Shown here piece by piece: positions 48,606 to 53,743 of a DNA stretch of 64,000 bases (the first letter of the stretch is position 1; each line of letters begins with the position of its first letter). Both the position numbers and the translations under genes were made by a program. The DNA is from Entomortierella parvispora E1425 (lineage: Eukaryota; Fungi; Mortierellomycota): contig BQFW01000015.1 in NCBI GenBank assembly GCA_020891255.1, positions 1,054,001 to 1,118,000 of the forward strand, read 5' to 3'. The notes under the pieces are model-generated. The model was not told the DNA's origin and ran no database searches. It saw only the letters and a program-made list of their open reading frames with translations.

Positions 48606-50864
48606 ATGTCTACCGCAGCTCCCTTGACACCACCACCTTCCCCTGGTAGAAGTGAGGAAGAAAGACTCTCATGCAAGTCCACCTCGACTCTAGTGAGGTC
48701 CAAAAGACCCCCTACCTCCCCCACTTCCCCTACCCGTTCCCCATTCAGTCGGAGTAGGTCAAATGCAAGCAGCACCAGCTTGTCAGAACCAACAAATAAC
48801 TCGAGCCATTCCCTTACTCAATCCGAGCCGGGAGATGACTTTCTGGGGGTGAGGTCCAGAAGAACTCTGCACAACTACAACGATGGCGTCGCTGGCGCGC
48901 AGCCTACTCCAAGGGTTGCAAGAGAAACCAGAGCCATTTCGACTTTCTTGGCTTCCATTCAACATACAGAGACACAACCGCAAGAGGATTACCGAGAATA
49001 CGTGCCTCTTCTGTCTTCGAGTGCACCTCTCACTCGAGGATTGGCAGTAAACAAAGGGCGGCCTCTGACATCGCCTGCCAGCTGTCGGGCAAGGTCGCGG
49101 ACACCAAGAGCGACTCGGTCACAGAGCACCAGCATCTCTGCCCCCATTGTGGTCGTTGGATTCAACCAAGTGCCGTCTGCAAGCGAAGAAGAGCTGAAGG
49201 TCAGCTATCAAGAGTTTACAGCAAGTGGAGCCCCACGTTGTCAAGGGTTTGCAATCTCTCAAGGCAAACAATGTGGGTTTTCCGCGCCTGCGTGCCGCCT
49301 TCATGTAGAAGCCAATAGGGCGTCCCAAGCCTCAAAATCAAAAGAGGCCGTCCCTTCAAGAGTCTCCCCTTCAAGAACCGTCAGTGAACCTATTTCATCT
49401 GCCTCAATAGTGTACGCACCATTCACAAGAGATGGCCGGCCTCGGTGTCAGGGCACGGCTCTCTCTGGTGGGCGGCAGTGTCTGTTTCCAGCTGCCAGTT
49501 GCCGGTATCATGAACATGCTGCCCAGGTTACTCAACACAAGTCCGCTCCAGTCTCAAGGGTGACCACGCCGTTTACAGCCTCTGGAGACCGTCCCACGCA
49601 AGAAACGCGCCCTCCAAAAGATGAATTGGACTCGAGCCATTACGAACCGTTCTTGCAGAATGGTGCCCCTCGCTGTCAAGGCTTTGCACTCTCTCAGAAT
49701 GGCCAGTGCCTGTTCCCAGCGGCCACTTGTCGTTTCCACCCTCAAGTCAGTCGAACAACACGAACCTCAAGTGCCGTTGCTCCTGCCCCGGTTGTGGCCA
49801 GCTCTACTGAAATTCCACCTGTGCCCATCCTTAAGCCATCTGCCCGCGCCTCGAGCTCAGTCGTCTCTGCACCCATTATCGTCCCTGCCATTCCTGCTGT
49901 CCCTGCTATCCCTGCTCAGACTCAAATTCAGATCCAGCCACCTCCATCGCTTGCAAGCAGGTCAGCTCGCGCTCCTCCATCTTCGTTCGTATCGGCTCCC
50001 ATTTTCTTGCCCAGCGCTCCCACAACCTCCTTTGTGTCGGCCCCCATTGTCCTGCCCAGCATTAGTCAAGCACCACCTCCCGTTGCCCTGCCCAGTATTA
50101 GCCAAGCCTCTCTTCCCATTGTAAATAGACCAGCGCGGGCAGCGGCTTCGATTGTCTCGGCCCCCATCATGGTTGTTGGTGTAAACCAGGCACTCCCTCA
50201 GAAAGCCGAGCTGGAGTCCATCTACGAGGCGCCTACTACCTATGGCCCACCTCGACGGCGTCAGGCTTCTGTCGATAGTGGTCTCCATGCCATGGGCATC
50301 CACAGGGCATCCCAACTGCCCGGCTTTAGACCCTCGGCTCCCATGTTCAACGCCAGCGCATCCGCAGCCTCTCTGCCTCCTATCGACTTCCAACCTCTGA
50401 CAAGAGATGGTCGTCGCCGGTGCCAGAGCTACACTGCCAACATGGCACGACAGTGTGTGTTCCCCGCTGAGAGTTGTCGCATCCACGATCAAGTCAACTT
50501 CAAAGCCGCCGTGGGTGTTTCTGCGTCCAAGATTGCGGCTGCCTTGGCTGTGGCTATGGACACTCCTAGCACTCGTTCCAATCGTAGGACAATGTACTTC
50601 CAAGAAGACACAAGCTTTTCCTCGTCCTCTTCCTCTTCCTCTTCCTCCTCCTCTACCACCTATATGCCGCTCACGGCTTACGGTGTGCCAAGGTGTCAAG
50701 GATTTGCAGTCTCTCAAGGCAAGCAATGCCAGCTCTCGGCGGCCAGCTGTCGTTTCCATGTTCAGGCAAACCAGCCACAGCCTTCCCGCATGTCAGAATC
50801 CAAGGTCCGCCTTACCAGCTATGACATGCAGTCGTTCAGGAGGAATGGTATGGAGTACATCTAG
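48606..50864 (+). CDS. Intronless 752-aa Ser/Pro/Ala-rich protein with five C-x10-C-x6-C-x2-H putative zinc-finger repeats
   Basis: Long open frame. Five 33-aa modules at 49206, 49413, 49641, 50388 and 50661 share Y/F-x-P-x-T-x-x-G-x-P-R-C-Q-G...Q-C-x-F-x-A-x-x-C-R-x-H. Conservation of these at the amino-acid level supports coding status. Confidence 0.88.
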   Translation: MSTAAPLTPPPSPGRSEEERLSCKSTSTLVRSKRPPTSPTSPTRSPFSRSRSNASSTSLSEPTNNSSHSLTQSEPGDDFLGVRSRRTLHNYNDGVAGAQPTPRVARETRAISTFLASIQHTETQPQEDYREYVPLLSSSAPLTRGLAVNKGRPLTSPASCRARSRTPRATRSQSTSISAPIVVVGFNQVPSASEEELKVSYQEFTASGAPRCQGFAISQGKQCGFSAPACRLHVEANRASQASKSKEAVPSRVSPSRTVSEPISSASIVYAPFTRDGRPRCQGTALSGGRQCLFPAASCRYHEHAAQVTQHKSAPVSRVTTPFTASGDRPTQETRPPKDELDSSHYEPFLQNGAPRCQGFALSQNGQCLFPAATCRFHPQVSRTTRTSSAVAPAPVVASSTEIPPVPILKPSARASSSVVSAPIIVPAIPAVPAIPAQTQIQIQPPPSLASRSARAPPSSFVSAPIFLPSAPTTSFVSAPIVLPSISQAPPPVALPSISQASLPIVNRPARAAASIVSAPIMVVGVNQALPQKAELESIYEAPTTYGPPRRRQASVDSGLHAMGIHRASQLPGFRPSAPMFNASASAASLPPIDFQPLTRDGRRRCQSYTANMARQCVFPAESCRIHDQVNFKAAVGVSASKIAAALAVAMDTPSTRSNRRTMYFQEDTSFSSSSSSSSSSSSTTYMPLTAYGVPRCQGFAVSQGKQCQLSAASCRFHVQANQPQPSRMSESKVRLTSYDMQSFRRNGMEYI

Positions 50865-51274
50865 GGGAGGTCCAAAAACTTGACAGTCTCTTCGTTGCTT
50901 TTTGCAAACTATTCATTATAATGAACTTTTCATGGCCTATATACAACAAATGTCAGATAATAAAAAGATAAAAAAAATATACCCTACATGAAAACGCGTA
51001 GATGTGAAGGGGGTTCAGAGATGTACTTGTCATACGAGCTCGGGCACGCGCTCAACAGAGGTGAACAGTACAAGACTCTTCTAAAGTTGTTTTCGTTCAT
51101 GCTCTCTGCCAGAATACCCCAGTATCCTACTTGCAGCTAAAAAATAGCTCGATATCATGCGGCACCCCTGCATGCCAACGCCAACGATGGTTATTTTGAC
51201 TGAGGAATGATATTTCCACTTGGATCATGATTGTAAACTCAGTTTATTGTATGACAAAAGAAAGTCTTGTTGCA

Positions 51275-53068
51275 CTATGTGGCCATCACAGGAGGAGCCG
51301 CCGTCATGCTCTGAGAGGGAAAGGGTATCGGTGACGGTGGCGACGGTTGTACGAAAGGGCCCACTTTGAACATTGTCGAAATATCGTATCCTTGACCGAG
51401 GGTCGAGGAGGTTGATTTCTCAGGGCTCATAGTAGAATTTGGAGTCGTGATCGTGGCCTCCGACAACTTTCGATCGCCTTGGTATGGGTATAATGGCGAG
51501 GAAGCGTTTTGGGGCTGTAGGATTTTTGGACGGATGAGAACAAGTGAAGACGTTGTCGACTGACTCGACAAGCGTCGTTGATTGTCCAAGGACTGGGAAG
51601 AACAGGCTCCCGCAATAGACGAAGCAGGCGAATGGACTGTCAGACTAGCTCGATGATGAGAAGAAGGCAATTGTGGTGGCAAAGTTGTAGTTGAAACAAC
51701 TTCCATTTCATCCATAGAACGACCTGAGAGCGAGGACCGACGGTCGTTCGCGATCGAGCTCCAGGACATGCTATTGTACATGTAAGGCAGTGGGAGCTGG
51801 AGAGGAGCCGATGAAGTGGAAGGCGACGGTGGTGCACTACAGGACAGACTAGACGTTCCTAGAGTCGATGGGCACGCACACTCTGCAGCGACGCTAGAGG
51901 GGCCTAAACCAGCAACTCCTTGAAGGTGGTGATGATGTGGGATCAAATGCCGTCTCCCACCCACACTAGGTCCCGTTGAAGATGCGACAATCGATGCAGG
52001 CGGGCAAGTCAATACCCGATGCTGGACTTGTTGTTGAGAGCTTTGCCGTCTTTGCAGTGTTGCCCGCTGCACAGATGGTCTTCTGGAGGACTGCTGCAGC
52101 TGTTGCAATTGCTCATACTTCGATGCAATGTCCTGTGGCCCCGTTCCAGGAAAACAAGCGGGGGCAGTGATCTCCAACGGATGGATCGTGGACATGACAG
52201 GAGAGATCATGGACATGGCAACCGTTGGTGCCGTTGACGAGGAGTCAGGGAAACTGCCAAGAGCAGAGCCGGGGAAGGGGGAAGGGGGAAGATGAGCCTC
52301 TGCAACAGAACTATCCGCCCTTGACGCGCCCGATGCATGAAACATTGAATTTCCGATGCTCGACATCGGGCGGGACACAGAAGAAGAGGCAGTAACGGTC
52401 GCACAAGATGACGACGAAGCGGATGAGTTGAATCTCCATGCCTTGTTTCGGAACGAAGGGAGAGACAGTGAAGACGACAAAGACGACGACATCAGTCCAT
52501 TTTTGGGGCGCCGAGGCAGTAACCGGACAAACGCCGTTTTGAAACGACGTGTGACAGGAGAATGGGATCTTGGTGGTGTCGAGGACGCCGTCGACAGCGA
52601 GGACAAGAGAAAGGGGTGAGGGGAGGAGAGTGGCGGACTTTGCTGAGTGGCCTTGGATGAAAAGAGTCTGTACTGGGGAGATCTCGCTTTGGGTGAGGGG
52701 CTCGGTGCCGCGGAGGCGCTCCAGGACGACGCAGTCGACGACGACGTGGAAAAGAGGAGTTGCCGTACTGGCTGATGAGATCTTGAAGATGAGATGGAGT
52801 GAACGGTAGCATGGGTATAGTGATGTTGCTGGTGGTTTGGGAGATGTGTAGGCAGATATTGCTGATTGCGGGGGTAAGGCGACGCCAGGAGGTTGGAGTC
52901 GGTACTGACGGTTCTCCTTGTGGTAGTATAGGAGGATGAGGTTCCGTAAGACGACGATGAGGATATACTTGAACCCTCAAACCCAGAGTCTTGACAGGAT
53001 TGAGTTCGGGACTTTTGGTTGTCCTTTCTCTTTCGCTTGTCTCTCCATGAAAAGATTGAAAATGTCAT
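51275..53068 (-). CDS. Hypothetical intronless Ser/Pro-rich disordered protein (~597 aa)
   Basis: Long ORF starting MTFSIFSWRDKRKRK after a pyrimidine-rich leader. Low complexity, no recognisable domain. Confidence 0.6.
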   Translation of the reverse strand: MTFSIFSWRDKRKRKDNQKSRTQSCQDSGFEGSSISSSSSYGTSSSYTTTRRTVSTDSNLLASPYPRNQQYLPTHLPNHQQHHYTHATVHSISSSRSHQPVRQLLFSTSSSTASSWSASAAPSPSPKARSPQYRLFSSKATQQSPPLSSPHPFLLSSLSTASSTPPRSHSPVTRRFKTAFVRLLPRRPKNGLMSSSLSSSLSLPSFRNKAWRFNSSASSSSCATVTASSSVSRPMSSIGNSMFHASGASRADSSVAEAHLPPSPFPGSALGSFPDSSSTAPTVAMSMISPVMSTIHPLEITAPACFPGTGPQDIASKYEQLQQLQQSSRRPSVQRATLQRRQSSQQQVQHRVLTCPPASIVASSTGPSVGGRRHLIPHHHHLQGVAGLGPSSVAAECACPSTLGTSSLSCSAPPSPSTSSAPLQLPLPYMYNSMSWSSIANDRRSSLSGRSMDEMEVVSTTTLPPQLPSSHHRASLTVHSPASSIAGACSSQSLDNQRRLSSQSTTSSLVLIRPKILQPQNASSPLYPYQGDRKLSEATITTPNSTMSPEKSTSSTLGQGYDISTMFKVGPFVQPSPPSPIPFPSQSMTAAPPVMAT

Positions 53069-53743
53069 GATCAGTAGGTGGAGGGTGAGTTGGGAAGTGA
53101 GAAGATGGTGAAGCCAGGAGGAACGGAAAATGGTTAAGAGAGTGAGGAAGAGATGATGTTGAGCGATGGGAATGAAGAGAAGAGAAGAAAAGAAGAGAAA
53201 GAAAGAAAAAAAAAAGAGAAACAAGATATGCAAGGTGTCTGTGGAGTGGGTTGAAAACAAGGGCAGATGACATTATTTGTTTTCTCCTCAACATCACGGT
53301 GAACGAGAGACGCACTGAACACAACCCCACAGATCCATTATTGGGAACACACGAAGGAGCGAGACAGAGATGCTCAATTGCACCCTCCACCCTTCCTCGG
53401 TCGTCCGCACTTTTGGGGACACGTCAAGACAACAGCGATGACAAGCAGGGAAATGGATGAGCAATTGTGCCTTTTTCTGTTGCACCCCTTCCCTTTTACG
53501 ACCGAACAAACACACCAGCGATCGGAGCAAAATGAACTGAAAAATGAATAAAACGGGTTGCCCGCAAATCATGGTTTGCGCTCTGTCTCTTGTGCTAATG
53601 TTGCTGGATGCTGGGAGTGTGGGGAAGCTGGACTTCTACCTACGCTGCCTCCCACGGCACAACTGTTCTCCCTCTTGCTCGTCAACCTCAAGATCAACAC
53701 AGAGGACTTGCAGTCAAATCTGGATTGGCCTTGAACACTGGGT

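Follow-up and report, generated by a model that had tools for sequence, protein, structure and literature searches.

In the genome of the fungus Entomortierella parvispora E1425, an open reading frame (ORF) at 48606-50864 on the forward strand of the window analysed here (64,000 nucleotides of contig BQFW01000015.1, positions 1,054,001 to 1,118,000) is a genuine, lineage-restricted protein-coding gene whose product carries five small CCCH modules. Sequence comparison establishes these modules as homologs of fingers of phages and mobile elements that straddle three catalogued families: HGGxSTG, zf-TRM13_CCCH and DUF5763. The interpretation that we prefer joins lineage restriction and homology of the five short-loop fingers to the phage and bacterial HGGxSTG-type finger with a likely role of the protein as a multivalent nucleic-acid binder, and we hold this combination with moderate confidence. 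The ORF is single and stop-free, with 752 codons encoding 752 amino acids (aa) followed by a stop codon, and contains the following features.

48606..50864, forward strand: complete ORF (from translation, the ortholog P0001 on contig L024, and an N-terminal motif common to the annotated starts of the paralogs)
49206..49304, forward strand: CCCH module 1 (C-x10-C-x6-C-x2-H), 33 aa (translation and alignment; AlphaFold2 (AF2) model with a predicted local distance difference test score (pLDDT) of 88.8)
49413..49511, forward strand: CCCH module 2, 33 aa (translation and alignment; 88.7 bits to the module profile)
49641..49739, forward strand: CCCH module 3, 33 aa (translation and alignment)
50388..50486, forward strand: CCCH module 4, 33 aa, the most diverged (RRRCQS…) (translation and alignment)
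50661..50759, forward strand: CCCH module 5, 33 aa (translation and alignment)

In the 752-aa protein a regular-expression scan gives five matches to C-x10-C-x6-C-x2-H and no more, with the first Cys at residues 212, 281, 357, 606 and 697; 20,000 shuffles that preserved its composition produced not a single match. The coordinates and sequences that the initial annotation had given for five 33-aa modules match the translation exactly. Fifteen of the 17 Cys of the protein fall inside the modules, where ten alignment columns (G, R-C-Q, Q-C, A, C-R and H) never vary, and identity between pairs of modules is 46-66% at the nucleotide and 39-67% at the protein level. According to Tandem Repeats Finder the modules form no DNA tandem array, which indicates that they are old, diverged duplications. 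They are strung like beads along the chain on linkers rich in Ser, Ala and Pro (15.8% S, 11.8% A and 11.0% P), in support of the multivalent arrangement first described from the sequence. The product as a whole is net basic (K+R 78 vs D+E 43) and contains many SP/TP sites; a Pfam scan found no other domains in it. Outside the fingers the chain is long, basic, rich in Ser, Pro and Ala, and probably disordered. A full-length AF2 prediction made with a two-sequence alignment gave a pLDDT of 30 throughout, modules included, and is not usable as evidence of disorder.

Each module probably binds one Zn through its three Cys and one His. We infer this because the CCCH positions are invariant across the five modules, two paralogs and two species, and because the AF2 model of module 1 (41 residues, 12-sequence alignment) is compact and confident, with three short strands and, ahead of the third Cys, a helical turn. 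Shape searches of the ESM Atlas with this model ranked a phage cluster first, a 'putative HGGxSTG domain-containing protein' cluster second and a cluster of bacterial hypothetical proteins third; the template modelling (TM) scores by query were 0.60-0.66 (0.64 for the HGGxSTG cluster), with root-mean-square deviations of 1.9-2.5 A over 36-38 residues.

Comparison with a related species indicates that the gene is maintained. A soil-metagenome contig (L024) encodes the ortholog, P0001, which is 75% identical over aligned columns and has all five modules. Both loci are flanked upstream by a mitochondrial-carrier gene (93% identical) and downstream by a Ser-rich ORF (69% identical), which in the window is, like the finger gene, one long open frame (661 aa, on the reverse strand at 51275-53260); the lower of these identities implies that a second fast-evolving, low-complexity gene adjoins the finger gene. 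The 752-codon frame is intact in both species and all 20 of the 20 ligand positions are kept in both. Between the window gene and P0001 the ratio of nonsynonymous to synonymous substitution rates (dN/dS, Nei-Gojobori) is 0.194 over the whole gene; it falls to 0.079 in the 165 module codons and is 0.227 in the remaining ones, so the frame is maintained by selection and the fingers most strongly; the purifying selection on the modules that had been proposed earlier is thus borne out by a syntenic ortholog. The start codon, ATG at 48606, is backed by the N-terminal motif, which the annotated starts of the two paralogs share, as does P0005, a relative described below. A word-based protein search returned P0001 as the sole relative, its candidate list having been saturated by low-complexity words.

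Retroposition, which the initial annotation had considered as a possible origin, finds no support, and together with recent insertion it is ruled out by the conservation of both flanking genes beside the ortholog. About 90 nt past the stop codon, at 50955-50981 on the forward strand, there is a short A-rich tandem repeat, (AGATAAAAAAA)x2.5, which probably belongs to the 3' untranslated region or polyadenylation region; we do not read it as the tail of a retrocopy because the synteny is conserved.

To place the modules among known proteins we used an HMMER profile search of 1.84 billion cluster representatives, with E values scaled to Z=1.84e9 and a listing threshold of E<=1e-3. A profile of nine fungal modules matched just 12 proteins at this threshold. 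They include the ortholog, the two paralogs and two eukaryote-like proteins with a single finger, P0005 and P0012. Three bacterial matches (P0006, P0007 and P0008) have a predicted membrane segment and a coiled coil ahead of a C-terminal finger; P0010 is phage-like and 188 aa long; and P0011 (E 7e-4; 218 aa) carries a T5orf172 domain (41 bits) preceded by two short-loop fingers, C-x9-C-x5-C-x2-H. Two further matches were set aside as repeat-driven false positives: P0003, a retroelement-like protein with a 16-aa acidic repeat in 25 copies, and P0009, in which the repeat is apparently read out of frame. A profile of only the five window modules recovered P0006-8 (E 9e-7, 1.3e-5 and 2.6e-5) and P0010 (E 9e-4). 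The loose likeness to viral and bacterial RCxG…C…CxxH motifs noted in the initial annotation was therefore a correct lead, since a module profile retrieves bacterial and phage-type proteins; a profile built from the five repeats, as suggested there, gave significant bacterial and phage matches, and scans with Pfam and NCBIfam gave no direct match to the modules.

The similarity extends well beyond the ligands. The sequence is (L/E)PLTxDGKPRCQGIxxSKxRQCxxP…C[RK]xH in the bacterial fingers and Y/F-x-P-[FL]-T-x-D-G-R-P-R-C-Q-G…RQC.FPA..CRxH in the fungal ones, and the window modules, the bacterial relatives and the phage-type protein have in common the extended motif PLTxDG[KR]PRCQG…QC…C[RK]xH. 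Between the fungal and the bacterial or phage fingers, ~12 positions other than the ligands are similar, among them the residues leading up to the first Cys; common non-ligand residues are seen when fungal YEPFLQNGAPRCQG…NGQC..PA is set against LEPYLPNGAQRCQA…TGQQC.NPA of the Thermus phage phiMa. The bacterial and phage members all have the spacing C-x10-C-x10-C-x2-H, as does the TRM13 finger of the E. parvispora genome itself; in the fungal modules the middle interval is x6 or x5. The Cys/His spacing, initially described as invariant, is so inside the window protein but differs in the paralog on contig 12, with its x5 middle, and in the bacterial and phage relatives.

Phages themselves provide further members. 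In tblastn, P0010 matches the Thermus phages phiMa and Cumys at E 1e-5, and P0010 and phiMa gp01, the N-terminus of which is LEPYLPNGAQRCQARSKSTGQQCKNPAVSGYSVCSVHG, both belong to PHROG 3678, a function-blank group. The best tblastn match of module 3 in 2.3 Gb of phage DNA is likewise gp01 of phiMa/Cumys, at 41.5% identity and E 0.3, which alone is not significant and is consistent with the profile results. Around the bacterial relatives, small genes follow one another on the same strand, among them DUF4326, YAcAr, DUF932 and D5_N primase; such neighbourhoods are mobile-element or phage contexts. P0006 (L020:6001-6447) and P0008 both adjoin a YAcAr-domain gene (a weak match in the P0008 contig) amid small mobile-element genes. 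A genome search with P0006 found no relative, and a tblastn search of plasmids with P0006 found nothing.

We next compared the modules with each of the named families. HGGxSTG members (NF041373; phiMa gp01, PHROG 3678) resemble them in the R-C-Q/x-G/A start, the Q/x-C second ligand with 'PA' next and the final C-[RK]-x-H, have identical C-x10-C and C-x2-H spacings, and have in common with them the pre-finger sequence [YL]-E-P-[FYL]-[LT]-x-[ND]-G. They differ in a second loop of 10 rather than 6 residues, in having one finger and a phage or bacterial host where the window protein has five fingers and a eukaryotic one, and in the GGxSTG tail: no H-G-G-x-S-T-G follows C-x2-H in the modules, where the residue after His is V, E, P, D and V, while HGG is kept in P0010 and HGA is found in phiMa. 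Against the NF041373 cut-off of 29 bits, P0010 scores 21.4, phiMa gp01 23.1 and a Manatee Spring phage protein 29.2; neither the window protein nor its modules reach it. In the finger core, homology to HGGxSTG members and near-members is found (P0010 at E 9e-4, P0006-8, and the HGGxSTG cluster at TM 0.64).

zf-TRM13_CCCH (PF11722), the N-terminal Zn-1 of the tRNA 2'-O-methyltransferase TRM13/TRMT13, has the same ligand order and outer spacings as the modules. Its curated cut-off of 20.9 bits is passed by P0006 (22.8) and P0008 (21.4), with P0007 at 15.7, and the sole match in the E. parvispora genome is the true TRM13 finger at 40.6 bits. The modules stay below the cut-off, their middle loop is 4 residues shorter than in C-x10-C-x10-C-x2-H, and the 752-aa protein has neither the CHHC finger nor the methyltransferase domain found in TRM13. 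DUF5763 (PF19067) and the other CCCH fingers of fungi and large viruses that lie on the N-terminal side of T5orf172/MUG113 (GIY-YIG-like) domains follow the same general pattern as the modules, xCxGxTxxGxxC…CxxH; the second loop of the T5orf172 fingers in this genome is 10-17 residues long, unlike that of the window modules, and the window protein falls short of 26.3 bits to PF19067 and has no T5orf172 or MUG113 match of the kind that adjoins this finger. Classical CCCH fingers (TTP/TIS11d, C-x8-C-x5-C-x3-H) are also small and often tandem, with the same order of ligands (three Cys, then one His). Their conserved non-ligand residues differ; neither a PF00642 match nor C-x7-8-C-x5-C-x3-H is present. 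The earlier statement that the spacing is unlike that of classical CCCH or CCHC fingers holds, in that the last interval is x2 and not x3, the first is x10 and not x7-8, and Pfam gives no match.

Since all of the score and spacing tests failed, formal membership in each named family fails. The proposal of an undescribed zinc finger nevertheless overstates the case, because the module profile retrieves proteins in catalogued families (PF11722 above its cut-off, and NF041373). The fungal module is a short-loop, tail-less, amplified eukaryotic variant of a catalogued, uncharacterised finger class, unusual in host and architecture, and not a new fold class or mechanism. Our literature search found no paper naming DUF5763 or HGGxSTG, and the T5orf172 literature found in it does not describe the associated finger.

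Searched in six frames with the module profile, the E. parvispora genome yielded two further genes carrying the module, GJJ76098.1 (EMPS_08457, P0002) and GJJ77438.1 (EMPS_09797, P0004). EMPS_08457, at contig 12:215259-216515 (L014:4260-6317, reverse strand), has seven fingers. Six lie in 64-aa (192-nt) tandem repeats with 81-96% DNA identity and the spacing C-x10-C-x5-C-x2-H, a pattern that points to recent amplification or concerted evolution; the last finger is diverged and has C-x10-C-x6-C-x2-H as in the window gene. EMPS_08457 also gives summed weak matches to several function-blank PHROGs. EMPS_09797, at contig 13:1901023-1901145 (L015:2885-5025, reverse strand), has two fingers, one clear and one degenerate. 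The exons downstream of them look T5orf172/GIY-YIG-like (GYVYF…; C..C…H.E.F), and the annotated model, which ends within that region, may be mis-spliced. The C-terminus may thus be a T5orf172-like domain, for which a pairwise BLAST match of the exons to a T5orf172 protein of the same genome (E 9e-4) is the sole support: Pfam was silent on the C-terminus searched in three pieces, exon by exon, and searches of the genome with PF10544 and PF13455 (T5orf172, MUG113) miss it. P0005 matches P0004 at E 8e-6 over about 200 aa.

The genome has at least six T5orf172 matches, three of them within 35 kb (contig 13:2129087-2164306; L027, L028, L030) and the others at contig 1:66951-69028 (L025), contig 2:2604257 (L026) and contig 11:275875 (L029). 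At five of the six loci an upstream open frame carries CCCH-type fingers, C-x9-10-C-x10-17-C-x2-H, and the gene on contig 1 has two DUF5763 (PF19067) matches, of 29 and 23 bits; PF19067 matches nowhere else in the genome.

The finger family is extremely narrow in eukaryotes. Its range covers this genome, with three genes, a single closely related species known from metagenomes, and P0005 and P0012. A strict back-translated DNA pattern for DG[KR]PRCQG-x7-QC had no match in 185,579 bacterial and archaeal species genomes (one each) and none in IMG/VR, and in the JGI metagenomes it found the ortholog plus four out-of-frame chance matches. These nulls provide no evidence of a donor among sequenced bacteria, endosymbiont genomes included.

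The most reasonable model that joins these results takes as its source type the small C-x10-C-x10-C-x2-H finger of phages and bacterial mobile elements, catalogued as HGGxSTG, overlapping zf-TRM13_CCCH and related to DUF5763. In the fungal version, 4-5 residues would have been lost between the second and third Cys, and the finger, which lacks the HGG tail, would have been amplified within the gene. Each module would hold one Zn in a short beta-hairpin and helical turn, and the likely contact surface would be formed by the Arg and Gln residues that adjoin the ligands and never vary (R-C-Q, Q-C, C-R-x-H). The most likely function would be multivalent, low-specificity nucleic-acid binding, with DNA more likely than RNA as the target. 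We propose this because of the company that the family keeps, namely D5-type primase, terminase-region genes and T5orf172/GIY-YIG proteins, and we favor it further because the protein is basic and invariant Arg and Gln flank the ligands. Multivalent nucleic-acid binding is our best guess.

Several observations weigh against this interpretation. Pfam and NCBIfam searches with the whole protein and with single modules at E<=10 gave no match (PF11722, PF19067, NF041373, PF00642), six-frame searches of the genome with PF11722, NF041373 and PF19067 did not list the modules, and neither the TRM13 finger of this genome nor its T5orf172-associated fingers score above ~0 bits with the module profiles; an expanded profile (A3) does not draw them in either. 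The link to the TRM13 and T5orf172 fingers rests on intermediates, because the module profiles give those fingers about zero and PF11722 is passed narrowly. The exact 752-aa product is absent from a collection of 15 billion proteins. On the structural side, fold searches of the PDB with the 41-residue model (Foldseek; VIA-align wide) found no match, as expected at that size, and a search of BFVD gave E>1 only; a fold match of a ~40-residue model in any case carries little weight. ESM Atlas feature searches gave no usable match, a PDB sequence search with the module profile returned nothing, and the genome's own TRM13 exon found weak AN1-finger noise only in the PDB. Modelling and fold comparison along the lines first suggested thus produced a confident, compact model with phage and HGGxSTG clusters nearest in the ESM Atlas, but the PDB side of the comparison was empty. 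As to function, deletion of the CCCH finger Zn-1 from human Trmt13 left tRNA binding and activity unchanged (PMC8922252), so that nucleic-acid binding is not established for any member of the finger class.

How the fingers reached the fungus is a separate question, on which we hold one possibility tentatively: that a phage or mobile-element finger entered the Entomortierella lineage horizontally, possibly in a T5orf172-type selfish gene, was loop-shortened and amplified to finger-only arrays (five-fold in the window gene, seven-fold on contig 12), and acquired a host function. Examples of such a function would be multivalent binding of chromatin or DNA and defence against mobile elements of the same class. 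Transfer from phages or mobile elements into the Entomortierella lineage is plausible; the phage or bacterial origin raised at the outset is likewise plausible, the relatives lying in phage or mobile-element contexts. E. parvispora hosts Burkholderiaceae-related endobacteria (PMC8759367).

Outside the fingers the chain has conserved features of its own, which are listed here.

48606..48647, forward strand: N-terminal motif MS[ST]xxALxTPPxSP, common to the paralogs EMPS_08457 and EMPS_09797 and to P0005
49137..49157, forward strand: SAPI-type hydrophobic short motif 1 (SISAPIVVVG), kept in the ortholog
49866..49886, forward strand: SAPI-type motif 2 (sequence motif scan)
49992..50012, forward strand: SAPI-type motif 3 (sequence motif scan)
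50037..50057, forward strand: SAPI-type motif 4 (sequence motif scan)
50157..50177, forward strand: SAPI-type motif 5 (SIVSAPIMVVGVN), same letters in the ortholog
50238..50351, forward strand: non-finger block TYGPPRRRQASVDSGLHAMGIHRASQLPGFRPSAPMFN, fully conserved in the ortholog alignment

The window protein, both paralogs and P0005 all start with MS[ST]xxALxTPPxSPxPxE(D/E), a motif like a proline-directed phosphorylation site, and the conserved block at 50238..50351 includes a basophilic-kinase-type RRxS site (RRRQAS). The SAPI-type motifs, [ST][IFV][SV]-S-A-P-I-[VIFM]-[VL], form a second repeat in the window protein. Their number (five) and order are kept in the ortholog, and there are none in the two paralogs; at least two occurrences were seen in 29 of 20,000 shuffles. 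Their hydrophobic cores after Ser (IVVV, IIV, IVL, IMVV) resemble, as sequences, SUMO-interaction-type short motifs.

These features bear on an alternative that we consider doubtful, yet a serious rival given the Trmt13 deletion result: the fingers would be protein-interaction modules of a multivalent scaffold, in which the Zn beads, the SAPI motifs and phosphorylatable Ser/Pro stretches recruit partners such as SUMO-like or adaptor proteins. Human Trmt13 Zn-1, dispensable for tRNA binding and catalysis, is the only experimentally probed member of the class; the five SAPI[VIM][VL] repeats and fully conserved linear blocks are typical of short interaction motifs; and the pairing of the finger with a predicted membrane segment and coiled coil in P0006-8 is atypical for DNA binding. 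Such a role, however, has no known partner, and sits poorly with a family found in the company of T5orf172 nuclease-like domains, primase and phage replication or packaging regions and with the net basic character of protein and modules and the invariant Arg and Gln beside the ligands.

It is improbable that the modules are a truly new zinc-finger family, as the initial annotation read them, with the phage and bacterial likeness a convergence on the Cys/His pattern. The lack of a direct match to any Pfam, NCBIfam or PDB entry, the lack of a PDB fold match and the failure of the module profile to score the TRM13 and T5orf172 fingers of the same genome are all in keeping with novelty, but convergence does not readily account for database-wide matches from the window modules alone with E down to 9e-7, for similarity at ~12 non-ligand positions including PLTxDG[KR]PRCQG, for intermediates that pass PF11722, or for a shape search that points to HGGxSTG clusters. 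Least probable is a non-functional or decaying ORF, the remnant of a selfish T5orf172-type element whose duplicated finger region goes unused by the fungus: the possible T5orf172-like C-terminus of EMPS_09797, the very narrow taxonomic range and the missing exact product would fit it, but a 752-codon frame intact in two species with dN/dS of 0.19 overall and 0.08 in the fingers, conserved synteny and the retention of 20 of 20 ligand positions in both species speak against decay.

Fingers of the HGGxSTG, zf-TRM13_CCCH and DUF5763 families occur widely: in phages, plasmids and large viruses, in T5orf172 proteins and in a conserved tRNA methyltransferase. We know of no ligand for any of the three, and no solved structure of such a finger is present in the PDB copy searched. 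The value of the present gene lies in tying an orphan fungal repeat to this existing but unstudied family: a five-bead fungal protein under strong purifying selection is a natural multivalent reagent for asking what the finger recognises, and it is a case of a mobile-element domain that has expanded within a very narrow range of eukaryotes, in a fungus with resident endobacteria. If horizontal transfer proves to be true, the gene would be a rare documented case of eukaryotic domestication and multiplication of an uncharacterised phage zinc finger, and would offer a tractable eukaryotic handle on the binding targets of HGGxSTG/TRM13-type fingers.

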